Shown: positions 15,954-61,932, counted from the stretch's first letter. The stretch: 64,000 nucleotides of DNA from Hyaloraphidium curvatum SAG 235-1 (GCA_025558095.1 JAIVFI010000037.1:1-64000); one strand, 5' to 3'. Translations and numbers: made by a program. Notes: a model not told the origin generated them from the letters alone.

Positions 15954-18558
15954 ATGTTTCGGAAGAAAGCCGCGGCGAAGCCTGTGAGCGCGGAGAGCGC
16001 GCAGACCGTGGAGAGCGTGGAGAGTGGAGAGGAGTGCCACCGTCGGGGTTGGCAGTACGAGAACGGCGACGGCGTCGCCAACGACCTCGTAGAGGCCGCG
16101 AAGTGGTACTGTAAGTCGGCGGACCAGGGCAACGCGAGCGGGCAGGTCAATCTCGGACGGTGCTACGAATATGGCTGGGGCGTGGCGAAGGATCTTGCCG
16201 AGGCCGCGAAGTGGTACCGCAAGTCGGCGGACCAGGGCAACGCCGTCGGGCAGGTCCACCTCGGACGGTGCTTTGAGAACGGCTGGGGCGTCGTCAAGGA
16301 CCTCGTAGAGGCCGCGAAGTGGTACCGCAAGTCGGCCGACCAGGGCAACGCTGATGGACAGGACAGCCTCGGCGCGTGCTACGAGAACGGGTCGGGTGTG
16401 GCGAAGGACCTCGCCGAAGCCAGCCGGTGGTACCGCAAATCGGCCGACCAGGGCGATGCGTACGGGCAGAAGAACCTAGGACGGTGCTACGAGAACGGCT
16501 GGGGCGTCGCCAACGACCTCGTAGAGGCCGCGAAGTGGTACCGCAAGTCGGCGGACCAGGGCAACGCGAGCGGGCAGTTCAACCTGGGACGGTGCTACGA
16601 ATATGGCTGGGGCGTGGCGAAGGATCTTGCCGAGGCCGCGAAGTGGTACCGCAAGTCGGCGGACCAGGGCAACGCCGTCGGGCAGGTCAACCTCGGACTG
16701 TGCTACGAGAACGGCTGGGGCGTAGCCAAGGATCTCGCAGAGGCTGCAAAGTGGTACCGCAAATCGGCCGACCAGGGCGATTCGTACGGGCAGAACCATC
16801 TCGGCCGGTGCTACGAGAACGGCTGGGGCGTCGCCAAGGATCTTGCCGAGGCGGCAAAGTGGTACCGAAAGGCGGCGGACCAGGGGAACGCCAGCGGGCA
16901 GGTCAATCTCGGAAGGCTTTACGAGAACGGCTGGGGCGTCGCCAAGGACCTCGCCGAGGCCTTGCGGTGGTACCGCAAATCGGCCGACCAGGGCAACTTG
17001 GACGGGCAGTACAATCTCGCACTTTGTTACCAGTTCGGCAAAGGCGTCGAAGTCAATCTCACCACGGCGCTGGATCTGTACCAGAAGGCCGCTGCGCAGG
17101 GTGACGAGGACGCCAAAGCTCGCGTGGAGCAGGTGCAGGCGGCCATCAACGTGCAGCGGGCTGCAGAGGAGCGCCGGCGGACGGAAGAGGCCGAGGCTGC
17201 CGAGCGGAGCCGTGCCGCTGCCGAGGCGCGCGCGAAGCAGGAAGCCGAAGCCGAAGCACGACGCCGGCGGGAGGAAAACTGGGCGAAGGAACGCGAGAGG
17301 CTGGAGCTCGAGCGCCGGCGCCAGGAGGCGGAAGCCGAAGCCCGTCGCCGCCGGGAGGAGGACCTGGCCCACGAGCGCGAGAGGCTGGAGCTCCAGCGCC
17401 GACGGATGGAGCTCGAGAACGAGGCCAAAGCGAGGGAGCTTGCCCTGCTTGCCGAAAGGTTGAAGCTGGAGCAGGAGCTCGCGGCGTTGAAGGTCCCGCA
17501 AGCCCAGACCCGGCTCGACGGATCGGCGCGGACGGCTGTTCCCAGCGCTCCTGGGAGCGCGGCCACGGATCGCACTGCCGACGAGGCCGGCAAGCCCAAC
17601 CTGGCGCGTTCCAAGACCTCGTTCTGGGTGGAAGAGGCCGACATTTCCTACGACCGGTCGAGCTGCCTCGGCAAGGGCGGCTTCGGGGTCGTCTATCGGG
17701 GCAAGTATCTTGACCTGACGGACGTGGCCGTCAAGGTGGCCCTCGACACGTACAGCACGGAGGAAGCCAGCGTCTTTCTCGAGGCCGAGGTCAAGGTCTG
17801 GGCTGAGCTGCCGGCCCACGACAATGGTGAGCGGTATGACTTTCGGCATGATGCGCATCCTGCTCACCAGATCGACTTCCAGTCGTCCCGCTCCTCGGCT
17901 ACCGCACCTCCCCGACGTTCCTGGTCACCAAGCTCTTCACGGGCGGGAGCATGAAGAGCTTCCTCGCCGCCCGGAACTGGGACCTCGCCCTCGCGCTGCA
18001 CCTCCTCGGCGACGCCGCCGTCGGCATGACCTTTCTCCACTCCAAGGGCGTCATCCACTCGGACCTCAAGGCCGAGAACGTGCTCGTCGAGGACGGCACC
18101 CGGATGCCCGTCGCTAAGATCGCCGACTTCGGCCTGGCCAAGGTGCGCACGCGGGTCGAGGACACCAAGGGGAACAAGGCGTACCAGTACCAGGGGCTCG
18201 CGGGGGCGACGATCCGGTACGCGCCGCCCGAGTTCTTCGACGAGGAGCCGCTGCGCAAGCCGTCGGACGTGTGGACGTTCGGGATGATGTGCTACCAGGT
18301 GCTTTCGGGCGGACGGGACCCGTTCTCGGACCTCACGAATCCGCCGGCTGTGAGTTGGCATTCGGCGCGAGCTTCCCGGCCTTGCTAACTGTTTTGCAGG
18401 TCATGAAGGCCATCTTTGGCGGCAAGCGCCCGCCGAGGCCCGACAACGTGCCGGATGCCGTGTGGTCGCTGATGCAGTCGTGCTGGAAGGAGGAGATGGG
18501 CGAGCGGCCGACAATGGCCGAGGTGGCGCGACAGCTCGTCCGGATCAGGGGTCGCTAG
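15954..18558 (+). CDS. Sel1-repeat (10 units) / coiled-coil / TKL-type protein kinase, copy 1
   Basis: 36-aa repeats GQxxLGxCYENGWGVAKDLAEAAKWYRKSADQG; E/R-rich coiled coil; GKGGFG, VAVK, HSDLKAEN, DFG, YAPPE, SDVWTFG. Introns 17827-17882 and 18350-18399. Confidence 0.92.
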
Positions 18559-18769
18559 GGAACGAAATCATCACGGGATTGCAATCCGATACTGTTTCGA
18601 TGACTTCCGCGTCTGCCGCCTGAGGACGCATGGCTCGGCGGGTGATCCGAGTTACGTCAGTCAGCGGCGGCCGGTGGCCAATCCGGCTCTCAAACCCGGT
18701 TTCGACCACGGCGCCATGTCCGCCACGACGGCCTCGCGGCTCGCCGCGCCGTCTCATTCACTGCAGCGG

Positions 18770-19117
18770 AGCGCGGAGACGGGCGCGGCGCGGCGGCATT
18801 CTACGCGCGGCTCACGACCGTCCCGCAGGAAGCACCGCACGCGCGCGCCTTTCCCCCCTCTCCTTACCGTCCCCTCGTCCCCCCATTCGCACCCACTAAC
18901 CCCCTCCCCCCCTTAGAACTTCGTCGACTTCCACCGCTGCGCCAAGGCCAAGGGCGACGACTTCCCCCCCTGCCTGGCCTTCAAGAAGGCTTACCTGTCG
19001 CTGTGCCCCTCGGCGTGGGTGGAGAAGTGGACGGAGCAGCTCGAGAACGGCACGTTCCCGGCCAAGGGCTTGGTGGAGGAGAAGCACGGGCACGATGATG
19101 GGCACGGGCACCACTGA
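18770..19117 (+). pseudogene. COX12: Partial COX6B duplicate (upstream piece fused to last exon; first coding exons deleted)
   Basis: Last exon 18917-19117 is nearly identical to 15198-15398; upstream cccgcaggaagcaccgcacgcgcgcgc jumps straight into the last intron. Confidence 0.85.
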
Positions 19118-19807
19118 ACGGGGGGTGGGGGATGCTTTTGCACTGAACGGGGGGGATTGGGAGGGGACGCTAATGCCATCGAGGATCTGACGAAGCAGGC
19201 CGGAGTGGTGCCGTCCGCGTCGTCCGCGTACCGTCCTTGCCTTCTTTCCCGCCCTCCGTCGCTGGCATCTCCAGGCAAGTCCCCTCCGCCCCGTCGTCCG
19301 CTCACCCGCCTTCGCCCATCGGGACCACCCTGCATCTCAGCGATCCCAACCTGCGCAGCGGGGAGCTCGCAGAGGAGCCGCGTCCCGCGACGGGGCGGAT
19401 GCGCACCGGGCGGCACATCACTCCGGTGCCCGGTGCAACGCCGAAGGACATCGGGGCATCGCGGTGCCTGGGTTCTATGCCAATCCATTCGGCGCGGAAA
19501 CAGGAGCACGGATCGGCGCCGTTCCGGCCGCGATGGCCCCTCTTTCCGTGCGACGCGGAGGGAGGGTCGCCGCCTCGCGCCCGCGGGGTGCGCCTTGGCC
19601 CCGAATTCCCCCAGAGCCGGATCCGGCGGATCACTATCGAGCTCAAGCATCAGCATGACGGCCGCAGAGTCCGTTTCTCGGCCTCCATCGCAAGTCAGTC
19701 ACGGCACGAAAGTCAGTCAGTCAAATCAGCGACACCAGCCCGCGCTCCCCCTCAGGGCCTCCACTCCCGCGTTCCTTCGGCGCTCGGACGGGTTCGCCGG
19801 GGGAGCG

Positions 19808-22800
19808 ATGTTTCGGAAGAAAGCCGCCGCGAAGCCTGAGAGCACGGAGAGCGCGGAGGAGTGCTTCAGCCGGGGCTATAAGCTCTACACCGGCGATGGC
19901 GTGCCCCAGGACCTGGCCGAGGCCGCAAAGTGGTTCCGCAAGGCTGCAGAGAAGGGACACGCAATGGGGCAGAACAATCTCGGCGTGCTCTATCGGGACG
20001 GTTCGGGCGTCGTTCAGGACCTTGATGAGGCCGCGCGGTGGTTCCGAAAGTCGGCCGACCAGGGCAACGCCCTTGGGCAGTGTAACCTCGGCGCGTGCTA
20101 CGAGAACGGCTCGGGCGTGGCCAAGGACCTCGCCGAAGCTCTGCGGTGGTATCGCAAATCGGCCGACCAGGGCAACGCGTACGGGCAGAAGGATTTGGGA
20201 CGGTGCTACGAGAACGGCTTGGGCGTCTCCAAGGACCTCGCAGAGGCCGCCAAGTGGTACCGCAAGTCGGCCGACCAGGGCAACGTGATCGCGCAGTACA
20301 ATCTCGGACGGTGCTACGAGAACGGCTGGGGCGTGGCCAAGGACCTTGTCGAAGCTGAGCGGTGGTACCGCAAGGCGGCCGACCAGGAGAACGTGATCGC
20401 GCAGTACAGTCTCGGACGGTGCTACGAGAACGGCTGGGGCGTTGCGCAGGACTATGCCGAAGCAGCACGGTGGTACCGCATGTCGGCCGAGCAGGGGGAC
20501 GCCTACGGCCAGAGGGCCCTCGGAACCTGCTACGAGAACGGCCGGGGCGTGGCCAAGGATCTTGCCGAGGCCGCGAAGTGGTACCGCAAGGCGGCCGACC
20601 AGGGCAACGCGATCGGGCAACACGACCTGGGACGGTGCTACGAGAACGGCTGGGGCGTGGCCAAGGACCTCCTCTTAGCTGAGAGGTGGTACCGCAAGTC
20701 GGCCGACCAGGGGAACGTGATCGCGCAGTCCGAAGTCGGACGGTGCTACGAGAACGGCTGGGGAGTGACCAAGGACCTTGCCCAGGCTGCAAAGTGGTAC
20801 CGCAAGTCGGCGGACCAGGGCAACGCCAGCGGGCAGGTCAACCTCGGACGGTGCTACGAGAACGGCTGGGGCGTGGCCAAGGATCTTGCCGAGGCCGCGA
20901 GGTGGTACCGCAAGGCGGCCGACCAGGGCAACGCGATCGGGCAACACGACCTGGGACGGTGCTACGAGAACGGCTGGGGCGTGGCCAAGGACCTCGTCTT
21001 AGCTGGGAGGTGGTACCGCAAGTCGGCCGACCAGGGGAACGTGATCGCGCAGTCCGAACTCGGACGGTGCTACGAGAACGGCTGGGGAGTGACCAAGGAC
21101 CTTGCCCAGGCTGCAAAGTGGTACCGCAAGTCGGCGGACCAGGGCAACGCCAGCGGGCAGGTCAACCTCGGACGGTGCTACGAGAACGGCTGGGGCGTGG
21201 CCAAGGACCTCGCCGAGGCTGCACTGTGGTACCGCAAGTCGGCGGACCAGGGCAATGCGCAGGGACAGCTCAACGTCGGACGATGCTACGAGAACGGATG
21301 GGACGTTGCGCAGGACCAGACCGAGGCGGTGCGGTGGTACCGCAAATCGGCCGACCAGGGCTACGCGTACGGCCAGTTCGCCCTCGGTCTCTGCTACGAG
21401 TACGGCAAGGCCGTCGAAGTCAATTTCACCTTGGCCCTGGATCTGTACCAGAAGGCCGCGGCACAGGGTCTTGAGGAGGCAAAGCAGGGCGTGGAGCGGG
21501 TGCAGATAGCCATCAATGAGCAGCGGGCTGCAGAGGAGCGCCGACGGAGAGAAGAGGCCGAGGCTGCCGAGCGGAGCCGTGCAGCTGCCGAGGGCCGCGC
21601 GAGGCAGGAAGCGGAAGCGGATGCGCGACGCCGGCGGGAGGAAAACTTGGCGAAGGAACGCGAGAGGCTGGAGCTCGTGGAGGCGGAAGCCGAAGCCCGT
21701 CGCCGCCGGGAGGAGGACCTGGCCCACGAGCGCGAGAGGCTGGAGCTCCAGCGCCGACGGATGGAGCTCGAGAACGAGGCCAAGGCGAAGGAGCTGGCGC
21801 TGCTTGCCGAAAGGTTGAAGCTGGAGCAGGAGCTCGCGGCGTTGAAGGTCCCGCAAGCCCAGACCCGGCTCGACGGATCGGCGCGGACGGCTGTTCCCAG
21901 CGCTCCTGGGAGCGCGGCCACGGATCGCACTGCCGACGAGGCCGGCAAGCCCAACCTGGCGCGTTCCAAGACCTCGTTCTGGGTGGAAGAGGCCGACATT
22001 TCCTACGACCGGTCGAGCTGCCTCGGCAAGGGCGGCTTCGGGGTCGTCTATCGGGGCAAGTATCTTGACCTGACGGACGTGGCCGTCAAGGTGGCCCTCG
22101 ACACGTACAGCACGGAGGAAGCCAACGTCTTTCTCGAGGCCGAGGTCAAAATCTGGGCCGAGCTGCCAGCCCACGACAACGGTGAGCGGAAGGATGGCGT
22201 CTGCCGCTGCGCGTCCTTGCTTATTCCGTCTTCTGCCAGTGGTCGCGCTGCTCGGCTACCGCACCTCCCCGACGTTCCTGGTCACCAAGCTCTTCACGGG
22301 CGGGAGCATGAAGAGCTTCCTCGCCGCCCGGAACTGGGACCTCGCCCTCGCGCTGCACCTCCTCGGCGACGCCGCCGTCGGCATGACCTTTCTCCACTCC
22401 AAGGGCGTCATCCACTCGGACCTCAAGGCCGAGAACGTGCTCGTCGAGGACGGCACCCGGATGCCCGTCGCCAAGATTGCCGATTTCGGCCTGGCCAAGG
22501 TGCGCACGCGGGTCGAGGACACCAAGGGGAACAAGGCGTACCAGTACAAGGGGCTCGCGGGGGCGACGATACGCTACGCGCCGCCCGAGTTCTTCGACGA
22601 GGAGCCGCTGCGCAAGCCGTCGGACGTGTGGACGTTCGGGATGATGTGCTACCAGGTGCTTTCGGGCGGCCGGGACCCGTTCTCGGACCTCACGAATCCG
22701 CCGGCTGTGAGTTGGCATTCGGCGCGAGCTTCCCGGCCTTGCTAACTGTTTTGCAGGTCATGAAGGCCATCTTTGGCGGCAAGCGCCCGCCGAGGCCCGA

Positions 22801-22915
22801 CAACGTGCCGGATGCCGTGTGGTCGCTGGTGCAGTCGTGCTGGAAGGAGGAGATGGGGGAGAGGCCGACGATGGCCGAGGTGGCGAGGGAGCTCATCCGC
22901 ATCAGGGGTCGCTAG
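19808..22915 (+). CDS. Sel1-repeat (15 units) / coiled-coil / TKL-type protein kinase, copy 2
   Basis: Same architecture as copy 1; kinase exons almost identical; two introns at the same positions. Confidence 0.92.
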   Translation: MFRKKAAAKPESTESAEECFSRGYKLYTGDGVPQDLAEAAKWFRKAAEKGHAMGQNNLGVLYRDGSGVVQDLDEAARWFRKSADQGNALGQCNLGACYENGSGVAKDLAEALRWYRKSADQGNAYGQKDLGRCYENGLGVSKDLAEAAKWYRKSADQGNVIAQYNLGRCYENGWGVAKDLVEAERWYRKAADQENVIAQYSLGRCYENGWGVAQDYAEAARWYRMSAEQGDAYGQRALGTCYENGRGVAKDLAEAAKWYRKAADQGNAIGQHDLGRCYENGWGVAKDLLLAERWYRKSADQGNVIAQSEVGRCYENGWGVTKDLAQAAKWYRKSADQGNASGQVNLGRCYENGWGVAKDLAEAARWYRKAADQGNAIGQHDLGRCYENGWGVAKDLVLAGRWYRKSADQGNVIAQSELGRCYENGWGVTKDLAQAAKWYRKSADQGNASGQVNLGRCYENGWGVAKDLAEAALWYRKSADQGNAQGQLNVGRCYENGWDVAQDQTEAVRWYRKSADQGYAYGQFALGLCYEYGKAVEVNFTLALDLYQKAAAQGLEEAKQGVERVQIAINEQRAAEERRRREEAEAAERSRAAAEGRARQEAEADARRRREENLAKERERLELVEAEAEARRRREEDLAHERERLELQRRRMELENEAKAKELALLAERLKLEQELAALKVPQAQTRLDGSARTAVPSAPGSAATDRTADEAGKPNLARSKTSFWVEEADISYDRSSCLGKGGFGVVYRGKYLDLTDVAVKVALDTYSTEEANVFLEAEVKIWAELPAHDNGERKDGVCRCASLLIPSSASGRAARLPHLPDVPGHQALHGREHEELPRRPELGPRPRAAPPRRRRRRHDLSPLQGRHPLGPQGRERARRGRHPDARRQDCRFRPGQGAHAGRGHQGEQGVPVQGARGGDDTLRAARVLRRGAAAQAVGRVDVRDDVLPGAFGRPGPVLGPHESAGCELAFGASFPALLTVLQVMKAIFGGKRPPRPDNVPDAVWSLVQSCWKEEMGERPTMAEVARELIRIRGR

Positions 22916-23084
22916 GAGTCAAAATCATCAAAGCATTGCAATCCAATACTGTTTCGATGACTTCGATGTCTGCCGCCTAAGAACGCATGGCTCTGCGGGT
23001 GATCCGAGTAGACGTCAGAGTGAGCGGCCCGCCGGTGGCCAATCCGGCTTCCATCCCCAACTCGATTGTCGACCACGCGCCGCC

Positions 23085-24887
23085 ATGTCCGCCGAGGCGG
23101 CCTCGTGGCTCGCCCTGCCGTCGGCGACGACGTTCCTCCTCGTCGCCGCCGTGGCGCTTCTCGCGTACGAGCTGATACGGAGAACATGGTTCTCGTTCGA
23201 CGACGACCTGCCGCTCCTCATGGGCCTGCCGTTCCTGAACCGGCCGCCCGCGGACCGTATCCGCGACATGCACGACTTTGAGAAGGGTGGGCTGCCGCGC
23301 AGGCGGGTCTCCAGAGCGCGCTGGCTGACGTGCTCGGCCGCAGAGCTCACATGGAAGCTCAAGACACCCGTGTACCGCACCATGTCCTACCTGAAGCCGT
23401 GGACGCGCTCGGTGCTCATCGGTGACCCGGCCATACTGAAGGAGATCTACGTCGGCGCGGCCGGGGGCTGGGAGAAGTTTGACCGCGGGCACCCGTATCA
23501 GGACTCCATGCAGCACCACGCCGGGGGTCTGATCCTGATCAAGAACGGGCAGCGCTGGCGCGAGGCACGCGAGGCGCTGGGCAACAAGACGTTCTCCTCG
23601 ACCACGATGCGGACCTACGTGCCCATCCTGAGGGAGCAGTTCACCATCATGCTGGAGCAGATTGAGCGGCGGCTGCGCGAGAGCGGCAAAGACACGGTGG
23701 ACCTGCAGGACATCTATTCCAACATGACTTTCGACATGATCTGCCGCCTCGTCTTTGGCGAGTCGGTGCACGCCCAGACGTCCCCCGAAGGCGCGGCCTA
23801 CCTCCACGCCTGGGACGGCGTCCTCGGCCTTGCCAACATCCTCTCCCTGCTCCACTCGCTGGTCGACAAATGGGTCTGGAAGCTGTTCCCCAAGATCTAC
23901 AACAAGTTCAACACCGACCTCACCAAGATCCAGTCGCTCGTGGACGACAACGTCCAGCGGCGGAAACGCGGCGAGGACCTCGACCGCGTGTCGATCCTGG
24001 ACGACCTGTTCCGCAACGAGAAGGCCCCCGCATGGCTCAAGGAGGACGCCAACGTCAAGCAGCAGCTCATCACCTTGCTCTTCGCCGGCCACGACGTGGG
24101 CCCGACGTGCCGCTCTCGCCACGACCTCCCTGACATCTCCACCCGCAGACCACCGCCGCCCTCCTCTCCTTCCTCACCTACGAGCTCGCTGCCCACCCCG
24201 ACTGGCAGCGCCGCGTGCGCGAGGAGGTCGTCGAGGCCTTTGGCACCGACACCTCGGAGCTCATCACCAACCTCGACAAGCTCGAGGCCATGCCGGTGCT
24301 AAATGCGTGCATCAAGGAGACCCTCCGGATGTACCCCTCGGCGCCGTTCGGCGCGGGGAGGGTGATGAACACGGATTACCTGTTCAAGTACACGGACCCC
24401 CTGACGGGCAAGCCGAGGCAGATCGACCTGAGGAAGGGCGGTGCGTGGTGCGATGGCGTGATGCGGTCCTTGGCTCACTTTGCCCTGCACAGACTCGATT
24501 CGCCCGTCGATGTACATCGCGCAGATGTACCAACCTTTTTGGGACCCCGCGTACGGCCCGGTCACCGAGTGGAACCCCGACCGCTTCCTCAAGGACCCCA
24601 ACGGCGGCGCCATCTCCATGTACTGCTACGCTCCGGTGGGTCGCCGTGCCGCACGCTCCGGCCGACTTGCAGCTCACCACGCCCTTCCCGCCGCGCAGTT
24701 CGGCAACGGCGCCCGTCGGTGCGCGGGCGAGCGGCTCGCCCTGTCCGAGGCGCGGCTGACCATCTCGGAGCTGGCGCGGCGGTACGAGTGGCGGATGCAG
24801 GACGGGTTTAAGTTCGCGGTCCTCATGACTGGAACGATAAAGGCACGGGACGGGGTGAAGGTGGTGATGAAGAAGCTGCAGAGGTAG
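23085..24887 (+). CDS. Cytochrome P450 (multi-exon)
   Basis: N-terminal TM anchor, LLFAGHD|T I-helix, KETLR, WNPDRF, FGNGARRCAGE heme motif. Confidence 0.93.
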
Positions 24888-25026
24888 AACTAGAATAGAG
24901 GCGGCGATTCGCCGACGTGTTGGTTGAAACGGGTAGGACCGAACGATACAAGCAAAGAAAGACATGTTTTCACGGCAGCCAACAAGCCGGAATCCCCAAC
25001 GGCATCCAAGAATGAGCAGACGAGGT

Positions 25027-45012: not shown

Positions 45013-45629
45013 CCCCCGCGGACGCCGCGCTGCCCGCCGCGCCGGGGGGGCATCCGCTGTTCCGGTGCGAGTTTGCGGGGGGCGTGCCGGGGATCGCGGG
45101 TAGGAGGCTGTACTGGATGGACTGCGGGTGCGCGGTGCCGCTGTCGTTCGCGGGCGGGGACGGGTACGTGAGGATGAGGATCCAGAGGGGCGGGGTGCAG
45201 CTGGCGGGGTTGGCCGTCTACTAAGTACTATTGTAGCGCTGTGGAATTGGTGCCCATGTACATGTGATCTAATTTTGACGGAGCGGCATCCTTAGCGGCC
45301 CATCCCTCAATGGATTCTGACTCGGGTCTAGACACCGAGACAACTCATGTCGTCGTTCCTTGTATCTCTCGGGGGCGGCGAGCAGAGCCAATGGGTGACA
45401 CGGCGCTGACCTCCCGGAACTCGTTCACTGGTTTGTCGCGCCTTGTGCGTCCAGCGGCCGCCAAATGCCGCGTTCGAAAACAGACCCTGCCGTTTGTCAG
45501 CAGCCGGGTGGCGGGGCTCCGATGACGTCCGGCGTCCCTTGACACCGCCCTTCACGGACTCACCCTCCAACAACATTGACTCCGGACACCGCGAGAGAAC
45601 CGCTCTCCCTGCGGCCCTGCCCCCCATCA

Positions 45630-48600
45630 ATGAAGTTCCTTCACCCAGCGGCCGCGGCCCCCACCGAGGAGCCGCCGCCGCGCTCCGACACTCCGCCGGC
45701 CAGCCGGACACCGGACCTGCTGCAGCGCATGTCGCCTCGGAGCCGCACGGACTCCAACTCGTGGCCGGGCGACACCGACACCGACAAGTCCGAGTCGTCG
45801 TTCCGCCCGCCCGGCGCAGAGCGCCGCCGCGGAGCGCGCTTCGGGCGGGGCCCCGCAGACGCCGCCCCGACGTCGCTGGCCGGCCTCCTCCGCCGCGACC
45901 TCCGCATCGCCCTGCTCTCCATCGGGCTGCTTCCGGACCCCGAGGCGCCCACCCCGGCGGGAAGGCTGGCCGGTTCGCCCCGCGCAGCCGCCGCGGAGTG
46001 GGCCAAGGCCGCAGCGTGGACTGCCGCCTTCTGCCTCGCCTTCTTCATCTTCGCATACCTCAGCCACATGTTCTACGACTCCTTTGGCTTCAGCTCCGTT
46101 TGGCTGCCCAATGGCCTGATCGTCGGGGCGTACATGGGCCTGCACTGGCGCGCCCGCTGGCTCCTCCCGGCCGCGACGTTCGCGACCAACACCCTCTCCA
46201 ACCACTACGTGGCGCACGAGCTGTGGGCGGGTGCCGCGGCGTCCGCCGCCGCCATTATCCTGGAGATCCTCCTTATCTCCTGGGTAACCCTGGCGCTGGC
46301 CAGTGCCTTTTCGCGGCGCCCTGGGGTCCGCCTCGACCTGGAATCGCTGTGGCACGTCCTCGCCTTCGGTATTGGCATGCTCTTCTGCCTGCCGGCGAAC
46401 GCGCTGTACGCCTGGGTGCAGATGGTGATCCAGGGGCAGCAAGGCGTGCCGTTCCCCGAGGTCATGCTCAGGTACATCGACTACGGCGCCGTGGTCGCCT
46501 GGACCCCCTTCATCGTGGCGGCCTGCAACACCCGGCCCAACTGGAAAGCGTGGAAAAAGCATCCGCTCAGGATCGTCGGCCTCGGCCTCATCCTCTTCCT
46601 CATCATCTCGATCACCATCATGCTGAGCAGCAAGCTCAAGGACGTGCTCTTCGGCGCCGTCGTCGGCCTCTTCTTCTCCATGCCCCTCATCATCCTCTCC
46701 GCCCCCCTCACCGAATCCAAGTCCCGCCTAGCGGTCGTCACCATGTGCGCCATGGTGGCGAGCATCATGAGCCTCATCATGATCCCGTGCTCGTATTACG
46801 TCGAACTGCGCAAGGGCAACGTCACCGACACCTCCCCGGGCCAGCTCCTGCTGCGGCACCTCCTTTGGATCCAGATCTGCATCTGCATCACGGTCTTTTC
46901 CAGCCTCCTTTTCGCGGATCTGCTGCTTGCGGTGGACCACGCCAAGGCCACCGTCGAGGAGCGGGTCCGAGTGCGCACGGAGCAGCTCCGCAAGGCCCGC
47001 GCGGCCGCCGAGCAGGCCGACCGGGAGAAGGGCGCATTCATCTTCTTCCTTTGCCACGAGCTTCGCAACCCCCTGCACGCCGTGAGCAACCTCACAGAGT
47101 CGCTCATCGAGGAGCGCGCAGCCGGGTTGAAGCAGGAGGCCGGCGCCGCGGCGCTCGAGGAGCCAGCGAGCCCGCTACTTGGACAAATCGACACCAGCCT
47201 GCTCGTCGAAGGGCGGCGGGAGGGCGCGCCGGCGGGAGAGCCGGCCGAGGCGGACCCGCTGCATGCGATACACCTCTGCACGGGGTACATGCTCGCGCTG
47301 CTGGCGGATGTGCTCGATGCGGGGAGGTTCGAGAGCGGCGCCGTGAGGCTCGACAGTTCGAGGACGGACCTGGCGGAGATCACCGAGTCGGTGTCGGCCA
47401 TGGCGGGGGAAATGGCAAGGACGCACCAGGTGGCTTTCGAACTGAAGGTGGGCTTATCGCGCCAGCGGTACGATAACTTTGCTCACGTTGTCTTCGGTAG
47501 ATGGCGCCCGATGTGCCCCGCTACGTCATGTGCGACCGCCTGCGTCTGCAGCAGGTCATCAACAACCTCCTCTCCAACGCCTTCAAGTTCACCAAGGCCG
47601 GCTCCATCACCCTCTCCATCGACTGCGGCCCCAAGAGCGCGCCCGTGCCCGCGGACCAGGTCTCCATCCCCATCCCCTCCGACGCCTCATCCACCACGGG
47701 CAGCTCCTCCGCCGCCACAGCCGTCGACCCCACCCCGTCGTGCCGCATGCTCCGGATCACCTGCGCTGACACCGGCGTCGGCATTCCCCCCGCCGTCCTC
47801 CCCACGCTTTTCCAGCCCTGGACGCAGGCTTCGGTGAGCACCTACAGGGATTACGGCGGATCCGGCCTGGGGCTGGCCATCGCGGCGCAGATCGTCGCGT
47901 TGATGGGGGGCGAGATCGGGGCGAGGAGCGAGGTGGGGGTGGGGACGGAGTTCGAGTTTTGGGTGCCGCTGGAGGAGTGTGCGGGGCCGGAGGTGGTCGA
48001 GGGGGCAAAGGAGGCGCGCAAGACGGGGGCGGACGTGCGCAAGGGGGTGTCGGAGATGACGTTGGCTTCCGGGCTGCCGGAGGCCCCGGTTGCGGCCCTG
48101 CCGGGGCCTTTCTGGGACTCGCAAGTGGCCGTGGATGCAACGACGGACCCGTTGCCCCCGCCTCGGACTCGGCGAATCCTCGTCACGGACGATTCGGCCA
48201 TCAACCGACGGATCTTGGTCAAGATGCTCCGCGCCGTGCTGGCCCGCCACGAGCCCGCCACGCGCGACGACTGGGAGATCGACGAGGCCGAGAACGGCGC
48301 CGAGGCCGTGGACTTGGTGCGCGCGGACCTCGCGGGACCCAAGGAGCTCGCGCTGGTGCTGATGGACGTGGTTATGCCCGTGATGGACGGGTTCGAGGCC
48401 ACGCGCGAGATACGGCGGCTGCAGCGCGAGGCAATTGAAGCGGCCCAGGCGCCGCTGCCGACCGAGAGCGCGGTGTCGACATCGACCCTGGGGGCGGACA
48501 TGGACGAGGAGCCGTGGGAGCTTCCAGTGGTGATCACCACGGCGAATCAGGTCAGCAATTCGCCGGACCAGGAGTGGGCGTTGTGCGGGGCCAGCGAGGC

Positions 48601-48667
48601 CATCTCGAAGCCGTTTGGAAAGGACAAGATCGAGGCGCTGCTCGTCAAGCACGGGTGCCTGGCGTGA
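45630..48667 (+). CDS. Membrane-bound hybrid histidine kinase (MASE1-like multi-TM sensor, HisKA, HATPase, REC)
   Basis: SSVWLPNGL plus about 8-9 TMs; FLCHELRNPL; NNLLSNAFKFT; DTGVGI; YGGSGLGLAI; VTDDSAIN, LMDVVMPVMDG, SKPF. Intron 47448-47500. Confidence 0.9.
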
Positions 48668-51559: not shown

Positions 51560-51654
51560 CTAGGGGAGGTGATTCTGATAATGGGTTCTCTTCTTTTAGA
51601 GATCTGGTGCTCGATTCAACGTGCCACTCTGCTGTCGGTCTCTCCCAGATGGGC

Positions 51655-52656: not shown

Positions 52657-52745
52657 GGAACGGGCAGCCCAGCGTGAAGAAGACGTTTCGACTGTTTCCG
52701 CACGGCCCGCCCGGCGCCACCTGAATCACCTCCGGCCTCGCAAGG

Positions 52746-54075: not shown

Positions 54076-54186
54076 TGCAACCGGGCACCGTGAGAGAAGG
54101 CGGGAAGCAAGGAAGGGGTGATAGAGACTGGCATAGCCGACGAATCGGATCGGGTTCGCTGTCCGGCGCGGTGATGATTTCGTCTC

Positions 54187-55836
54187 CTAGCGACCCCGGA
54201 TCCGTATGAGCTCCCGTGCTACCTCGGCCATCGTCGGCCGCTCGCCCATCTCCTCCTTCCAGCACGACAGCATCAGCGACCACACGGCGTCCGGTACGTT
54301 GGCGGGCCTCTGGGGCCGCTTGCGGCCGAAGATGGCCTTCATGATCTGGTGCGGAAGACAATTAGATCCGTGTCCTGTCCACGGTCGGTCGACGTGCCGC
54401 TGGCGGGTTGTTGAGCTCCGCAAACGGGTCCCTGCCGCCCGATAGCACCTGGTAGCACATCATCCCGAACGTCCACACGTCTGACGGCTTGCGCAGCGGC
54501 TCCTCGTCAAAGTACTCGGGCGGCGCGTAGCGCACCGTGGCGCCGCCGAGCCCCTGGTACTGGTACGCCTTGTTGCCCTTGGTGTCCTCGACCCGCGTGC
54601 GCACCTTGGCCAGGCCGAAGTCGGCGATCTTGGCCACGGGCATGCGGCCGCCGTCCTCGACGAGGACGTTCTCGGCCTTGAGGTCCGAGTGGATGACGCC
54701 CTTGGAGTGCAGGAAGGTCATGCCGAAGGCGGCGTCTTGGGGTGCAGCGAGAGGGCGGGGTCCCAGTTGCGGGCGGCTAAGAAGCTCTTCATGCTTCCGC
54801 CCGTGAAGAGCTTGGTGATCAGGAACGTCGGCGACGTGCGGTAGCCGAGCAGCGCGACCCTGCTCTGCCGACTTGCGGTACCACTGCTCGGCCTCTACCA
54901 GGTCCTTGACAACGCCCCAGCCATTTTCGTAGCACCGTCCGAGGTTGATCTGCCCCAAAGCATTGCCCTGGTCGGCCGACTTGCGGTACCACCGCACGGC
55001 CTCGGCATAATCCTGGGGGACGCCCCAGCCGTTTTCGTAGCACCGTCCCAGGTCTTTCTGCCCGTACGAGTTGCCCTGGTCGGCCGATTTGCGGTACCAC
55101 CGGACGGCCTCCGCGAGGTCCTTGGCCACGCCCCGTCCGTCCTCGAAGCAGGATCCTAGGTTGCTCTGCGCATTGCCATTCCCTTGGTCTGCAGACCAGC
55201 GATACCACCGCACGGCCTCGGCATAATCCTGGGGGACGCCCCAGCCCTTCTCGTAACAGACTCCGAGGGCGTGCTGCCCGTACTCATTGCCCTGCTCTGC
55301 CGACTTGCGGTACCACTGCTCGGCCTCTACCAGGTCCTTGGCAACGCCCCAGCCATTTTCGTAGCACCGTCCGAGGTTGATCTGCCCCAAAGCATTGCCC
55401 TGATCGGCCGACTTGCGGTACCATCGCTCAGCCTCTACTAGGCCCCTGGAACGCCCCAGCCGTTCTCATAGCACCGTCCCAGATTGAGCTGGCCATCTGC
55501 ACTACCCTGGTCGGCCGACTTGCGGTACCACTTCGCGGCCTCGACGAGATCCTTGACCACACCCCAGCCGTTCTCGCAGCAACGTCCAAGGTCATTCTGC
55601 CGGTACGGGTTCCCCTGGTCGGCCGACTTGCGGTACCACCGCGCCGCCTCAACAAGGTCCTTCGTCATGCCCCAGCCGAGCTCGTAACACATCCCAAGGT
55701 TCCTCTGCCCGTGCGAGTGGCCCTTGTCCGCCGCCTTGCGATACCACTTTGCTGCCTGGACAAGGTCCTTCGCCACGCCATCGCCCTTCTCGTACTTCAG
55801 ACCCCGGCGATTGCAATCCTCCGCACTCTCGAACAT
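54187..55836 (-). pseudogene. Sel1-kinase copy 3: 9 repeats, frameshift in repeat 4, coiled coil and kinase N-lobe deleted
   Basis: Repeat ..KSAEQG joined directly to gtcgcgctgctcggctac (kinase exon 2) near 54858; frameshift and stop near 55440. Confidence 0.85.
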
Positions 55837-56466
55837 TGCTCTTCGCGCCGCGAGGACGAGGAACACCGTCGGACGTCGAGAATCGGGAGGGAACGGCCCT
55901 GAAGAGGAGCAGGCTGGTGCCACTTGATTTGACTGACTGACTTTCGCTCGTGACTGACTTCACCTGGAGCCCGAGAAACGGACTCTAAAGGCAATTCAAT
56001 GATGATTTGAGCCCTATAGCCGTCCGCCGGAGCCGGCACGGGCGATTCGGGGCACACGAGCACCTCGCACCGGGCGTCAGCCAGCCCGGAACGCGTCTGC
56101 GCATCACACGGAAAGAGAACCACCGGAGACGAAACAATACGAGGGGATCAGGTCCCGGAGCTCTGCAGGCCCAATCGCTCGTGGTGCCGCCTGGAGGCTC
56201 ATTTTTGTGACTTCGCGTCTGTTGATGCCGATCCGTCCAATCGAGGACCGGAGCGCGACCACGGGTCCTCGGAGTAAGCTATGAGATTAGGACGCATGCG
56301 GATGCGGGATGAAGCTGCCAAATTGATTCCGCGACCGACTCACTCGCCTCCGCGCCCGATGATGACTCGATGAATTCGCGCCATTTTCCTCCTCCACGCC
56401 CACCGTGTTCTGCACCCCCTCCGCCGCAAAAAAACCCCCATCCGCACCGCTGAAAAGCCATCGAAA

Positions 56467-57765
56467 ATGGTCGCCTCGCAGCAGGTCGTCTCGGCCACCT
56501 CCGGCACCCCCTCCCGCGCCCGGGCCGCCCGCGACGCCCCCAACTCCGCCGACCCCACCTCCCTCGCCGCGCTCCTCCTCTCCCCCACCCTGTCCCACGC
56601 CGACGCGCTCACGATTGCCGAGCTCATCTCCGCCCCGCTGGATCGCACGGCCGAGTATTACCGCCACCTCGCGCTCGCCAGCACCCCGCCGCCCCCTTTC
56701 CTCCCCACCGCCGTCGACCCCGGGTTCGCCGCCAGTGTGCCCGCGACGCTCAAAGCCGTCATGGGCGCCGCCAAGCTCGCATGGAAGCTGGCTCCCCGCC
56801 GCGGCGGCCCGGGCGGGCGAGGTGACGTGGCGGACCGCGGCCCGGTCGCGCTCGCCGTCGCGCACGGGGCGCTCCTGCCGACCCTCGGATGGATCCGGGC
56901 GGCGTTTGACGAGGGAACGATGCGGAGGTGGGGCGTGGTCGGGCCGTTCCCCGCGGACGCGTCATCCACTGCGCACGAGCCGGCTGGCGGCAAGCCCGGG
57001 GCGGACGTTCGCGCCGCGTTCCTCGAGGCATTCGTGCTGCCCCTCGACGCATGCATGATGGTCCTCCGCCCGCTCGAAGAGCACGCGGCGCTGCGGCGCA
57101 GGCTCGCCAGGCGGCCGGACTACGCCGAGGCGTCGGCCTTGCTCGCGCTGCTTGCCGACCCCGTGCGGGCGCTGTTCGAGCAAAAGGACTGGATGGCAGC
57201 GCCGGACGAGGACAAGATTGCGGCGATGCGCGCACTCGCCGGCGCCGGCACGGGGATCGCGATGGTGCTCCACGAGGACCCCGGGCCCGTGAGGGCGTAC
57301 CGCCTCCGCGCGGCCAACGGGGGGCGGCGCGACCTCGTCGGCGCGCTCTGCGGCTCGTTGGGCAGGCTCGCCTGGCTGGCCGAGCGCCGCGGGTTGCCGG
57401 GGGCCGAGGCGGCGGGGGTCGCGGCGGGGCTTCTCGCGGCCGCGATCGGAGTGCGGGGAAGGGAAGGGGGCTGGGCGACGCAGACGAGCGAGGCGATGGA
57501 GTCCGGGGCGCAGGAGCTGATGGAGACCAAGAGGCAGGCCGAGGGCCCCGGGACGGACCGGTGTGACGCGTGCGGCAGGCCGGAATCAGGGGGCAAGCTC
57601 ATGTGGTGCGCGCGGTGCGGGTTCGCGAGGTACTGCTCGCGCGAGTGCCAGCGCGGGGACTGGAAGGCGGGGCACGGGAAGGGGTGCGCGGGGGTGCCGG
57701 TGCCGGGGTTCGGGCAGGGGGCGAAGGGGGGCGCGATCGGGGGCGGCGGGAGGATGGCGGGGTGA
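56467..57765 (+). CDS. MYND zinc-finger protein with helical N-terminal region
   Basis: CDACGRPESGGKLMWCARCGFARYCSRECQRGDWKAGHGKGC. Confidence 0.85.
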   Translation: MVASQQVVSATSGTPSRARAARDAPNSADPTSLAALLLSPTLSHADALTIAELISAPLDRTAEYYRHLALASTPPPPFLPTAVDPGFAASVPATLKAVMGAAKLAWKLAPRRGGPGGRGDVADRGPVALAVAHGALLPTLGWIRAAFDEGTMRRWGVVGPFPADASSTAHEPAGGKPGADVRAAFLEAFVLPLDACMMVLRPLEEHAALRRRLARRPDYAEASALLALLADPVRALFEQKDWMAAPDEDKIAAMRALAGAGTGIAMVLHEDPGPVRAYRLRAANGGRRDLVGALCGSLGRLAWLAERRGLPGAEAAGVAAGLLAAAIGVRGREGGWATQTSEAMESGAQELMETKRQAEGPGTDRCDACGRPESGGKLMWCARCGFARYCSRECQRGDWKAGHGKGCAGVPVPGFGQGAKGGAIGGGGRMAG

Positions 57766-57951
57766 GCAAGCGGCAAAGGATGGAGGTACTCGCCCAGGAA
57801 CATTCGGGAGAGGAAGAGCTAGAGGGACACGGCTGCGGAGCAGGGCCATGTACAGTATCGGGAAAGGTGTGGGCGCGGGGCGAGGAAAAAGTGCTTCGGC
57901 GACGGGGAAAGGCAAGAGACGTTTAGGTCCGATCCCCCCCCCGCCGACGGC

Positions 57952-59070
57952 TCACCCCCACTCCTCCGTCGCGTTCCCCACCCTCCCCCACCTCTCCGCC
58001 ACCGCCAAGCACTCGACGCACATCACCCCCCACCCCCCCAACCCACGCAGCACGCCCCACCCCTCCCCCGCGTCCCCCCCGCGGCGCCACGCGAACGCCT
58101 CCCTGCCAACCTTCTTCAAATACCCGGCGGCTTCCTCGCCGCTCGAAAACGCCGCCAGCGCGACCGCCGCGCCGCGGGGGAACTGCTGCACGTTCATCGG
58201 CGGGAGCACCAGCGGCACCGTGTTCCCCGCCAATGCTTCGTACGCCTCCCGCGGGGGCATCTCCGACCCCTCCGCGGGCCGCGGGAACGCGGCGAACCTG
58301 TACCCGGCCAATTCGCCCGCCGTGGCGTTGCACCCCAGCCGGGCCAGCGCGTCCAGCTGCTCCAGCTCCACGAGCAGGCGGGGGGTGATGGTGCCGGGGC
58401 AGTCGGCGTAGGCGACGCGGGGGTCCTTTGCGAGGAACGCGGCCAAGGCCTTGCGGGGGGGGGTGCGGCCGGGGGTGAGGGCGGCGAGGAGGGCGGCGTC
58501 CAGGGGGACAACGGGCGCGTCGGCGCCCGCCTCGGGGGAAGACAGCAGCTCGAACGCGTCGGCGAGGACGGGTTCGGCGCCGTTGGGCGCGCGCAGGAGC
58601 CACGGCACCCATTCCGGCGCGTCGCCGGCGGCCTCGGGCCCGAACGCGCCCTCCAATCTCGAGCGGTCGCGGACCGCCGCTTCCGCGTGGAACGCGATCG
58701 CCGACGCCGCGGAGAAGGCGGGCCCGGCGGGGGGCGGCGGGTGGTGGCAGCACGCCACGGGGCACGGGGGGCACTCCTTCCTCCCCATCGCCTGCGGCGA
58801 GCCCGGCGCGGGCGCGGCCCAGACGACGTCCACCGGCCCGCGGTGTTTACCCGCGGCGCTCCGCAGGGCGGCGAGCGTGCGCGCGCGTCGGCACAGCGGC
58901 GCGGGGAGCCCGCGGCATTCGGCCGGGTGGGGCGGCTGCCGCGCGCTGCGCGGGGCCGGGGGGGCGGGCGGCGCGGGGCGGTGGTACGCGGCAATGTAGG
59001 CCAGCCGGAGGAGAACGAAGAGGGGGAGGAGCGCGGCGAGGAGGGCGGATTTCCGGAGGGAGGCCCGCAT
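57952..59070 (-). CDS. Degenerate GT10 alpha-1,3-fucosyltransferase-like type II membrane protein
   Basis: TM anchor and Pro-rich stem; ASAIAFH; YRFAAFPRP..PREAYEALAGNTVPLVL resembles YKFxLxFEN..TEK..AL..xVPxV. Confidence 0.5.
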   Translation of the reverse strand: MRASLRKSALLAALLPLFVLLRLAYIAAYHRPAPPAPPAPRSARQPPHPAECRGLPAPLCRRARTLAALRSAAGKHRGPVDVVWAAPAPGSPQAMGRKECPPCPVACCHHPPPPAGPAFSAASAIAFHAEAAVRDRSRLEGAFGPEAAGDAPEWVPWLLRAPNGAEPVLADAFELLSSPEAGADAPVVPLDAALLAALTPGRTPPRKALAAFLAKDPRVAYADCPGTITPRLLVELEQLDALARLGCNATAGELAGYRFAAFPRPAEGSEMPPREAYEALAGNTVPLVLPPMNVQQFPRGAAVALAAFSSGEEAAGYLKKVGREAFAWRRGGDAGEGWGVLRGLGGWGVMCVECLAVAERWGRVGNATEEWG

Positions 59071-59186
59071 TTCGGTGGGACGCGGGGTGCGGTGACCGTT
59101 GCTGGGAGGCGCGTGCGGCGCGGTTGCGGCAGGCGGTGCACGCACGGAATCGGAACCCGGCAAGGACGGATTCACATAAAGCGGAA

Positions 59187-59250
59187 GACAAAGCTCTTGA
59201 TCTAGTACACGAATGCAATGCTTGCAGCGGCGCGCAAGGCCGCGGGTATC
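59187..59250 (+). repeat. About 65-bp direct repeat (left); partner at 62154-62219
   Basis: gacaaagctcttgatctagtacacgaatgcaa...gcggcgcgcaaggccgcgggtatc in both copies. Confidence 0.9.
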
Positions 59251-59679
59251 CTCGATTTGCAGGAGCGAAGGAGGAAAGAGCGAAGGAGGAAAGCTGTCGC
59301 CGCGTCGGAAGAGATCGGGGGGACGACAATCCGTGTTGCGGTTTCGGCCAATCGATCAGCTCCACGAAATGTCGGATCGGCTCTTTTTCGTCAACAGCGG
59401 CTCTCTTTCCGTGCGTCTCACGCACCGGTGGCCTGCCGACACCCTCTGCGAGCTGCCGGTCCGCCCCGAATCCCCCCGAAATGGATCGGGCGTGCCCCCT
59501 ATCGACTCGCTGCATCATCGGATCGTCCGTCAGAGTCCGTTTTTCGGGCTCCACGGCAAGTCGGTCACGGGCACAAAGTCAGTCAAACCCGCGACACCAG
59601 CCCGCTCCCCCCTCAGGGCTCCACTCCGTGCGTTTCCTCGGCTTAGGACTGGTTCCGCGGGCTCGTTGCTTACAGAACC

Positions 59680-61932
59680 ATGAGCGAGGGCGGGGAAGAG
59701 TGCAATCGCCGGGGTTGGAAGTACGAGAACGGCGACGGCGTGGCAAAAGACCTGGTCGAGGCCGCCAAGTGGTACCGCAAGTCGGCGGAGCAGGGCGACG
59801 CCAACGGACAGTGCAACCTCGGCCGGTGCATCGAGAACGGGTGGGGCTTCGTAAAGGATGTCGACGTGGCCATGGGGTGGTACCGTCTGTCGGCCAACCA
59901 GGGCAACGCCAGCGGGCAGGACAACCTCGGACGGTGCTACGCGAACGGCTGGGGAGTCGCCAAGGACCTCGTCGAAGCCGTCAAGTGGCACCGCAAATCG
60001 GCTGAGCAGGGCAACGCCTTGGGGCAATACAACCTCGGACGGTGCTACGAGTACGGCTTGGGCGTTTCGCAGGACCACGTCGAAGCAGCACGGTGGTACC
60101 GCAAGTCGGCCGAGCAGGGGGACGCGTACGGCCAGAGGGCCCTCGGAACCTGCTACGAGAGCGGCTGCGGCGTCGCCACAAATTTGGCCGAGGCCGCAAA
60201 GTGGTACCGCAAGGCGGCCGACCAGGGCAACGCCTTGGGGCAATACAACCTCGGACGGTGCTACGAGAACGGCCGGGGCGTGGCCCAGGACGTCGCCGAA
60301 GCCGTGCGATGGTACCGCAAGTCAGCCGACCAGGGCGATGCGTACGTGCAGTTCTACCTCGGCGTGTGCTACGAAAACGGCTGGGGCGTGGCAAAGGATC
60401 TCATCGAGGCAGCCCGCTGTTACCGAAGATCGGCCGAGCAAGGCAACGCAGACGGCCAGAACGCCCTGGGATTCTGCTACGAGGTCGGCAAGGTCTTCGA
60501 CGTCAATCTCTCCTTGGCGCTGGATCTGTACCGGAAGGCGGCCGGACAGGGTCACGCGGACGCCAAGCTGGGTGCGGAGCGGGTGGAGGCAGCTCTCCAA
60601 GAGCAGCATTCTGCGGAAGAAGGCCGGCGGGGAGAAAAGGTCGAGGCAGCAGGTCGAAATCATGCTGCTGCCGAGGCCCGGACCGGGCAAGATGCGGGAG
60701 CCGATGCTGGGCGCCGCCGGGAAGAGGGCCTGGCGCACGAGCGCGAGAGGCTCGAGTTGCAACGTCGGATGGTGGAGCTCGAGAACGAGACCAAAGCGAG
60801 GGAACTGGCGCTGCTGGCCGAGAAGCTGAAGCTGGAGCAGGAGCTCGCGGCGTTGAAGGTCCCGCAAGCGCAGACGCCGCAAGACGGGTCGGGTCGGACC
60901 GCGGTTCCCAGCCCTCCCGGAAGCGCACGCACGGATCGCACGGCGGAGGGGAACGCCAAGCCAGGCCTGCCTCGCTCCAAGACGTCGTTCTGGGTGGACG
61001 AGGCCGACATCTCGTACGACCGGTCGAGCTGCCTCGGCAAGGGCGGCTTCGGGATCGTCTACCGCGGCAAGTACCTCGGACTGACGGACGTGGCCGTCAA
61101 GGTGGCTCTAGATACGTACAGCACGGAGGACGCCAACTTGTTCCTGGAGGCCGAGGTCAAGGCCTGGGCCGAGCTGCCCGCGCATGATAACGGTGAGCCA
61201 ATGGACTTCAGGCGGTGACTCGTGTCATTGCTCATCCGATCGTTCGCAAGTGGTCGCGCTGCTCGGCTACCGCACGTCGCCGACGTTCCTGATAACCAAG
61301 CTCTTCACGGGCGGGAGCATGAAGAGCTTCCTCGCCGCCCGCAACTGGGACCCCGCCCTGTCGCTGCACCTCCTCGCCGACGCCGCCGTCGGCATGACCT
61401 TCCTGCACTCCAAGGGCGTCATCCACTCGGACCTCAAGGCCGAGAACGTCCTCGTCGAGGACGGCGGCCGCATGCCCGTGGCCAAGATCGCCGACTTCGG
61501 CCTGGCCAAGGTGCGCACGCGGGTCGAGGACACCAAGGGCAACAAGGCGTACCAGTACCAGGGGCTCGGCGGCGCCACGGTGCGCTACGCGCCGCCCGAG
61601 TACTTTGACGAGGAGCCGCTGCGCAAGCCGTCGGACGTGTGGACGTTCGGGATGATGTGCTACCAGGTGCTATCGGGCGGCAGGGACCCGTTTGCGGAGC
61701 TCAACAACCCGCCAGCGGTACGTCGACGGACCGTGGACAGGCAGAACACGGATCTGATTGTCTTCCGCGCCAGATCATGAAGGCCATCTTCGGCGGCAAG
61801 CGGCCCCAGAGGCCCGGTAACGTGCCGGACGCGGTGTGGTCGCTGATGCAGTCGTGCTGGAAGGAGGAGATGGGCGAGCGGCCGACCATGGCCGAGGTGG
61901 CGCGGGAGCTCGTCCGGATCCGCGGTCGCTAG
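59680..61932 (+). CDS. Sel1-repeat (8 units) / coiled-coil / TKL-type protein kinase, copy 4
   Basis: Same architecture and intron positions as copies 1 and 2. Confidence 0.9.

Follow-up and report, generated by a model that had tools for sequence, protein, structure and literature searches.

Soluble Sel1-repeat kinases with variable arrays in Hyaloraphidium curvatum: three intact genes and one broken copy in a 64-kb window

Results

Gene models and domain architecture

The first 64,000 nucleotides of a contig of Hyaloraphidium curvatum SAG 235-1, a fungus of the Monoblepharidomycetes (GCA_025558095.1, JAIVFI010000037.1:1-64000; hereafter the window) carry four paralogous loci for proteins in which a tandem array of Sel1 repeats is joined, through a charged helical segment and a linker, to a protein kinase domain. 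Translation, motif searches and splice-site inspection resolved these loci into three intact genes (copies 1, 2 and 4) and one broken copy (copy 3), within DNA whose GC content is 64-74%. The window is the start of contig C37 of the genome that was searched (G000; 31.9 Mb in 55 contigs). The genes, their parts and the associated repeats found by Tandem Repeats Finder (TRF) or by sequence comparison are as follows.

15954..18558, + strand: copy 1, 832 amino acids (aa); exons 15954-17826, 17883-18349 and 18400-18558
16023-17102, + strand: copy 1, Sel1 array (10 units)
17103-17489, + strand: copy 1, charged helical segment
17490-17621, + strand: copy 1, linker
from 17622, + strand: copy 1, kinase
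17238..17401, + strand: 84-bp tandem duplication in the copy-1 helical segment, 2.0 copies, 82% matches (TRF)
19808..22915, + strand: copy 2, 999 aa; exons 19808-22181, 22240-22706 and 22757-22915
19850-21469, + strand: copy 2, Sel1 array (15 units)
21470-21844, + strand: copy 2, helical segment
21845-21976, + strand: copy 2, linker
from 21977, + strand: copy 2, kinase
21607-21748, + strand: 72-bp duplication in the copy-2 helical segment (TRF)
54187..55836, - strand: copy 3, broken; 9 Sel1 units (55827 down to ~54860), stop at 54187
59680..61932, + strand: copy 4, 712 aa; exons 59680-61192, 61251-61717 and 61774-61932
59689-60552, + strand: copy 4, Sel1 array (8 units)
60553-60855, + strand: copy 4, helical segment
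60856-60987, + strand: copy 4, linker
from 60988, + strand: copy 4, kinase
59187..59250, + strand: left copy of the direct repeat bracketing the copy-4 cassette (sequence comparison)
62154..62219, + strand: right copy of the direct repeat bracketing the copy-4 cassette (sequence comparison)

A preliminary description of this DNA had placed each array in a single exon, and in copies 1, 2 and 4 that exon in fact holds the entire array together with the helical segment, the linker and the N-lobe of the kinase. The kinase is split by two introns of 50-58 nt each; between copies 1 and 2, intron 1 (17827-17882 versus 22182-22239) is about 66% identical and intron 2 is identical. In-register counting returned the 10, 15, 9 and 8 units first described for copies 1 to 4, with Pfam in agreement for the arrays of 10 and 15. 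The copy-4 model equals NCBI protein P0002 at every residue and the copy-1 model equals P0001 over 821 of its 832 residues, while the protein search returned no database model for copy 2. P0001 departs from copy 1 eleven residues short of the stop and enters a COX6B-like frame (PF02297; window 18558-19200), and is probably a fused gene model.

In line with the earlier claim of their absence, neither a signal peptide nor a transmembrane (TM) segment was detected: the highest 19-residue Kyte-Doolittle mean is 1.45 and lies within the kinase, and the N-termini are hydrophilic. The initial domain reading holds: the proteins combine a soluble Sel1 solenoid, a helical segment rich in charged residues, and a kinase that is of Ser/Thr type and belongs to the tyrosine kinase/tyrosine kinase-like (TK/TKL) superfamily. 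The accompanying statement that there are four paralogues with almost invariant kinases applies to copies 1, 2 and 4 and fails for the broken copy 3.

The arrays vary on one face of a predicted helix A

The arrays are built from tandem 108-bp units without indels (TRF) and can be assigned by sequence to the Sel1-like repeat (SLR) proteins (PF08238). The Pfam Sel1 model matches 10 units in copy 1 (E 3.5e-94) and 15 units in copy 2 (E 2.2e-150), and a solved bacterial Sel1-repeat protein, 6OK3, is matched at E 3.6e-127. Every array opens with a fixed first unit (EEC..RG..Y..GDGV) and closes with a fixed last unit (..ALDLY.KAA.QG). Among the 27 internal units, variability is concentrated at positions 3, 6 and 7, where the entropy reaches 2.8, 3.3 and 2.1 bits against a mean of 0.8; positions 10, 16, 23, 26 and 27 are intermediate and the remainder are mostly near-fixed.

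An AlphaFold model of the copy-4 array, computed without an alignment and used for its secondary structure alone (predicted local distance difference test score, pLDDT, 53), contains two helices per unit, with helix A at positions 2-13 and helix B from about 19/21 to 34. Positions 3, 6, 7 and 10 would lie on one face of helix A because of their i, i+3, i+4, i+7 spacing. When the two repeat types are superposed on their L-G-Y scaffold, a Sel1 position would equal the TPR position plus one. Ligand contacts in TPR proteins are made by positions 2, 5, 6 and 9 on the concave face (PMC1261162). By analogy, Sel1 positions 3, 6, 7 and 10 would correspond to these four and hence may line the concave face of the solenoid.

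This concentration of variability on a putative binding face is the first of several observations that speak for a surveillance role, in which the arrays would act as diversifying receptors that recognise parasites, bacteria or conspecifics by their non-self molecules. Such a system would operate without a NOD module: a bound ligand would cause the helix to oligomerise, and the non-RD kinase would trigger defence or death, like NOD-like receptors (NLRs) or IRAK/RIPK modules. On the evidence assembled below we regard this role as distinctly unlikely. One reason is that a comparison with 61 units of twelve further Sel1 loci in the genome gave a similar variability profile (Spearman 0.79); the family varies where Sel1 arrays of this genome generally do. 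The same match speaks for a rival explanation in which the proteins are ordinary scaffold kinases, the solenoid serving as a constitutive adaptor through which the kinase docks on an endogenous complex, in the manner of Sel1/Hrd3- or Skt5-type proteins. The paralogues would then be redundant or subfunctionalised, and positions 3, 6, 7 and 10 would drift neutrally at exposed sites. Several positions, namely 10, 13, 14, 16, 22 and 31, are near-fixed in the family and yet variable in the other arrays, and the residues E13, N14, W16, L22 and K31, taken with the old synonymous divergence of the units described below, would fit a conserved binding feature common to such scaffolds. We consider the scaffold explanation somewhat unlikely.

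Selection and turnover of the repeat units

In pairwise comparisons pooled over the units, positions 3, 6 and 7 have a pN/pS of 1.25 and the other positions one of 0.29. A tree-based count over 34 units and 36 positions gave an omega of 0.35 globally and 1.15 at positions 3, 6, 7 and 10, with significant purifying selection at 21 of the 36 positions; position 6 alone is nominally above neutrality (P 0.04, uncorrected, 36 sites tested). The variable face thus evolves at about the neutral rate, and positive (diversifying) selection was not established in the repeats by either the pairwise or the tree-based counts, which give values of about 1 at the variable positions. By comparison, kinase dN/dS (the ratio of nonsynonymous to synonymous divergence) is 0.12-0.14 at a dS of up to 0.33, a sign of strong purifying selection, with a dN of 0.011 between copies 1 and 2 and of about 0.045 between either and copy 4. 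Entropy, kinase dN and the identity profile between copies all uphold the contrast drawn earlier between a conserved kinase and variable arrays. The low kinase ratio together with the purifying selection in the repeats indicates that the intact copies are functional. Values near 1 at the variable sites with strong purifying selection elsewhere favour the scaffold explanation, and values of 1.15-1.25 with a single nominal site in 36 count against surveillance.

The units themselves are old. They differ at synonymous sites by about 0.43 and TRF matches among them are 70-79%, so that the description of the units as highly similar was overstated and stands only for a few blocks at 97-99%. These blocks record recent duplications, of units 2 and 6 in copy 1 (97% identity), units 5 and 9 in copy 3 (98%), and units 8-10 and 11-13 in copy 2 (98, 99 and 93%). 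Blocks of three or four units duplicate within arrays and thereby change them, which, like the variability on one helix-A face, agrees with the first interpretation. The analogy to HET-E-style repeats fares differently: mean identity is 0.72 within arrays versus 0.71 between them, which together with the synonymous divergence indicates that whole arrays do not evolve in concert as those of HET-E do. This absence again counts against surveillance.

High internal conservation has been defined for NLR repeats as more than 85% identity over at least 100 aa (PMC4986451). Copy 2 alone reaches this level, through the one duplicated block in which units 8-10 and 11-13 are about 95% identical over 108 aa; the other copies fall short of it, the best twin block of copy 1 spanning 72 aa only. 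Internal amino-acid identity is 82% in copy 1, 72% in copy 2 and 62% in copy 4, compared with 40-64% in the other Sel1 arrays of the genome. From the standpoint of surveillance, the copy-2 block and the change in array length that recent unit-block duplications bring are points in favour, but internal conservation is borderline in copy 1 and ordinary in copy 4. For a scaffold the difficulty is a different one, as a fixed partner poorly explains why arrays range over 8, 10 and 15 units and why blocks in them have been duplicated so recently.

A non-RD kinase behind a charged helical segment

Copies 1, 2 and 4 carry the catalytic motifs GKGGFG, VAVK, EAEVK, HSDLKAEN, DFG and APPE, and by these motifs are predicted to be active eukaryotic protein kinases. 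HSDLKAEN is present in all four copies and identifies the domain, as read from its motifs, as a Ser/Thr-type kinase of the non-RD class, in which the Arg before the catalytic Asp is absent. This catalytic loop, shared by all copies, is in keeping with surveillance. Non-RD immune kinases, comprising the plant EFR/XA21 class and animal IRAK/RIPK relatives, have likewise lost the HRD Arg and are attached to a repeat-domain sensor, whereas the H. curvatum proteins are soluble and have neither a TM segment nor an ectodomain.

The affinities of the kinase point in several directions. Pfam scores PK_Tyr_Ser-Thr at 103.7 bits versus 79.3 bits for Pkinase, and a CW-x6-RP motif common to TK and TKL kinases is present, with a subdomain-X GxRP that resembles a motif reported for the fungal FslK lineage (PMC3937382). 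The top PDB matches by sequence are the tyrosine kinases EGFR, LCK and BTK, and the top non-fungal database matches are plant receptor-like kinase (RLK)/Pelle kinases at about 30% identity. The placement in TKL, introduced at first as the group that includes RIPK and IRAK, is a lead and not a result.

Between array and kinase lies a helical segment of 101-129 residues, of which 41-53% are Asp, Glu, Arg or Lys and about 20% are Ala. Part of it is duplicated in copy 1 (28 residues) and in copy 2 (24 residues), and the corresponding sequence is single in copy 4. About five Leu heptads can be discerned by eye in its last ~35 residues, and a Pro/Ser/Ala linker of ~44 residues connects it to the kinase. 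From its composition, the segment may be a spacer of the ER/K type with a short zipper at its end. A homodimer prediction with two chains of P0001 residues 384-515 returned a score of 0.00, which is no verdict and weighs neither way.

Duplication, proposed conversion and loss of copies

Copies 1 and 2 form a tandem pair in which identity is 78-80% over the last unit, 87-96% over the helix, 99-100% over the linker and kinase exons, and 82-84% downstream. This profile suggests that the kinase half has been homogenised by gene conversion, in tracts that appear to end at intron 1, and the kinase half looks like a mosaic between copies of the sort that conversion would give. Copies 3 and 4 are arranged head to head, and the 3.8 kb that separate them hold a MYND-finger gene; the kinases of the two copies are 91-100% identical and the first units about 83%. 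Copy 4 and its upstream region are bracketed by a 64-nt direct repeat (92% identity, first 32 nt identical), no further occurrence of which was found in the genome. From this arrangement, copy 4 looks like an inserted gene-sized DNA cassette of ~2.9 kb that retained its introns. As the tandem pair and the repeat-flanked copy illustrate, gene-sized cassettes duplicate in this family.

Copies also die, and copy 3 is a dead gene. A 1-nt deletion at ~55445 in its unit 4 produces TAG TAG (~55438-55455). Further on, the array is joined after unit 9, out of frame, to kinase exon 2 (~54849-54868, junction at ~54860), so that everything from the last cap unit through helix, linker and kinase N-lobe to intron 1 is gone. 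Kinase exon 2 carries a 4-bp deletion at ~54740 (~54731-54747) that restores the downstream frame by chance, and the donor of intron 2, at ~54395, is GC. Contigs of public sequencing runs, both DNA-like and RNA-like, match stretches of copy 3 without differences. In one low-depth contig of run X3 a further base is absent at 55505 in unit 4, which could be an allele or an error.

The available runs (n=3, one organism) consist of short contigs that break in the arrays, and no expression levels are readable from them. In run X2, contigs match copy 3 and the beginning of copy 4 without differences, and at one loose end copy-2 exon 1 is joined to exon 2 exactly at the predicted junction, indicating that copy 2 is spliced as modelled.

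The dead copy 3 and the position of copy 4 between 64-nt direct repeats, like an inserted cassette, are the kind of evidence that would lead one to see the family as decaying duplicates or as a passively spreading cassette with no function of its own. Two loci elsewhere in the genome, L007 and L001, look truncated or frameshifted and add to it. Nevertheless, in copies 1, 2 and 4 the reading frames are open, the splice sites intact and the catalytic motifs complete, and the signs of transcription in run X2, whose RNA nature is guessed, include contigs from the start of copy 4 and the spliced copy-2 junction. The kinase dN/dS of 0.12-0.14 at a dS of up to 0.33 is likewise contrary to it; the selection data disfavour functionless duplicates, which we judge very improbable. 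The birth-and-death pattern with one dead copy is a point for surveillance, and the repeated loss and rebuilding of copies across the genome is left unexplained by a constitutive scaffold.

Distribution of the family in the genome and in other organisms

A genome-wide census uncovered about a dozen related loci in several architectures. A search with the kinase exon returned 23 places, among which the four in the window match best; the Sel1 model returned at least 150 units across many contigs; and the family-specific last unit plus helix was found at about a dozen loci. At least eight further loci carry related Sel1, helix or kinase modules, and their forms were read in eight of the twelve loci retrieved. 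L010 and L011 are Sel1-helix-kinase genes with a different kinase subfamily, L002 is a Sel1-kinase without the helix and with near-identical units, and L001 is a probable frameshifted copy. A repertoire of about a dozen loci is a further point against surveillance.

Individual loci display additional arrangements. In L010 (G000:C1:1538000-1542000), a four-unit Sel1 module including its caps is duplicated in tandem within a single frame, upstream of the same helix type and then a kinase with GSGAF..VAMK. L007 (G000:C7:12500-16500) joins eight Sel1 units and half of the charged helix, within one open frame, to nothing of the kinase but its last exon (..FGGKRPPRP..VRIRGR); this kinase-less derivative could be a decoy, a regulator or a pseudogene. 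L004 (G000:C32:350000-355000) is a fusion with the kinase first and Sel1 last that is non-RD too (HCDLKPEN).

The closest kinases elsewhere in H. curvatum are fused to ANK, LRR or RCC1 repeats or to a second kinase domain. That one kinase clade is fused to Sel1, ANK, LRR and RCC1 repeats is compatible with surveillance, as is the listing of the protein kinase among the effector domains of fungal NLRs (PMC4986451). NACHT and NB-ARC domains were not found in the window proteins (Pfam), nor in the genome when all six frames were searched at E up to 0.001, although split exons could hide weak matches. The niche for a surveillance system could therefore be open. A bolder extension would be that this non-RD clade with interchangeable sensors (Sel1, ANK, LRR, RCC1) constitutes a NOD-less form of cytosolic innate recognition, with the Sel1-helix-kinase genes as its fastest-turning members, array length and positions 3, 6, 7 and 10 setting specificity, and dead or kinase-less copies serving as donors or decoys; we offer it as a long shot.

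Outside H. curvatum, the protein database search found no member of the family at more than 50% identity, a restriction that fits poorly with ordinary scaffolds; the best match in another organism is a protein of the chytrid Polyrhizophydium, at 36% identity. In a survey of the best 147 representatives from a library of 1.84 billion proteins, a kinase and Sel1 repeats co-occur in 28, with the kinase before the array in most and the array clearly first only in P0215. Named proteins with this combination come from Gonapodya, Polychytrium and Actinomortierella, in which fusions with the kinase first are found. Literature searches on Sel1 with TKL in Rhizophagus and on Hyaloraphidium kinases found nothing relevant, and Sel1-kinases of Acanthamoeba were dropped as candidates, the term Sel1 being absent from the genome paper.

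Comparison with known systems

In Glomeromycotina, expansions of Sel1-like and of kinase families have been described (PMC8647823, PMC8778642). The Sel1-kinase fusions of early-diverging fungi share with the present genes the combination of a TK/TKL-type kinase and a long Sel1 array in one soluble protein, and are lineage-specific and multi-copy (PMC8647823, PMC8778642). They differ in that the kinase usually comes first in the others and the array comes first in H. curvatum, in the charged helical segment and linker that the H. curvatum proteins add between array and kinase, and in copy number, which is about a dozen here and not hundreds. The H. curvatum family is one of the Sel1-repeat kinases of early fungi, with reversed order, an inserted charged helix and a non-RD kinase. 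Its kinase matches other Sel1-kinase proteins weakly, at 18-125 bits, which suggests that the H. curvatum fusion may be independent.

The fungal NLRs HET-E and HET-D are likewise soluble and have a superstructure-forming array whose unit number is altered by block duplication (Dyrka et al. 2014, PMC4986451), with variability on a putative binding surface. However, neither the H. curvatum proteins nor the genome match NACHT or NB-ARC, the repeats are Sel1 rather than the WD, ANK or TPR of NLRs, and the arrays combine an omega of about 1 at the variable positions with the lack of array-wide concerted evolution.

Bacterial Sel1-like proteins such as 6OK3 and HcpC (1OUV) share the 36-residue two-helix repeat, but are secreted or periplasmic and lack a kinase. 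Identity to 6OK3 over several units is about 45-50% as estimated by eye, a likeness that reflects near-consensus units and not a demonstrated transfer. Horizontal transfer from bacteria, considered on account of this match, was rejected as unsupported given the near-consensus units, the introns and the host-like GC.

Discussion

A candidate receptor-like function

With modest confidence, we lean towards reading these genes as a young family, so far found only in H. curvatum, of soluble receptor-like Ser/Thr kinases that bind partners via their Sel1 arrays. The partner, which could be a protein, a peptide or a glycan, would be bound by the concave face of the solenoid, with a specificity determined by positions 3, 6, 7 and 10 in helix A of every unit. 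Binding could then gather or release the kinase domains through the helical spacer or zipper and so permit their activation, for which non-RD kinases usually depend on partners or on clustering.

Several points weigh against this proposal. The structural model is of low confidence, the placing of the variable positions on the concave face rests on the TPR analogy, and, since the variable helix-A positions are generic in this genome, their variability is no proof of a specificity-determining role. In place of a dimer or zipper role, the helical segment could have that of a single-helix spacer. That run X2 is RNA is a guess, backed only by patchy cover and one spliced junction. As for the NLR-like immune-receptor reading, it is possible: the tests run permit it and do not favour it.

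In early-diverging fungi, few gene families have expanded as much as the Sel1-kinase fusions. The family described here is small and well resolved (three intact genes, one dead copy and several derivatives, with a clear unit history and a defined variable face) and is therefore tractable; it lets one ask what the arrays bind and whether repeat-kinase fusions replace NLRs in fungi without them. An ordinary scaffold role, if that is what the proteins turn out to have, would do away with speculation that recurs about the expansions in arbuscular mycorrhizal fungi (AMF).

Neighbouring genes and redundant contigs

Neighbouring genes were annotated from open reading frames (ORFs) and Pfam. In addition to the MYND-finger gene, they comprise unrelated genes for a cytochrome P450, a reductase, a major facilitator superfamily (MFS) transporter, a glycosyltransferase, an amine oxidase and a hybrid histidine kinase. 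Such a setting of unrelated housekeeping or metabolic genes is congenial to the scaffold explanation. A point against surveillance is that a death or executioner domain was not found among the window genes by ORFs and Pfam. A genome search for VWA domains likewise placed no match beside any of the Sel1-kinase loci retrieved. The hybrid histidine kinase gene (HisKA, HATPase_c and response-regulator receiver), at 45443-48667, lies between the two Sel1-kinase pairs.

Elsewhere in the assembly, four small contigs (C48, C51, C52 and C54) repeat matches of larger ones at identical scores: C52 equals C1 near 548 kb, C54 equals C7 near 29 kb, C51 equals C10 near 53 kb and C48 equals C30 near 60 kb. 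These contigs are probably haplotigs or redundant assembly and would inflate the copy counts.

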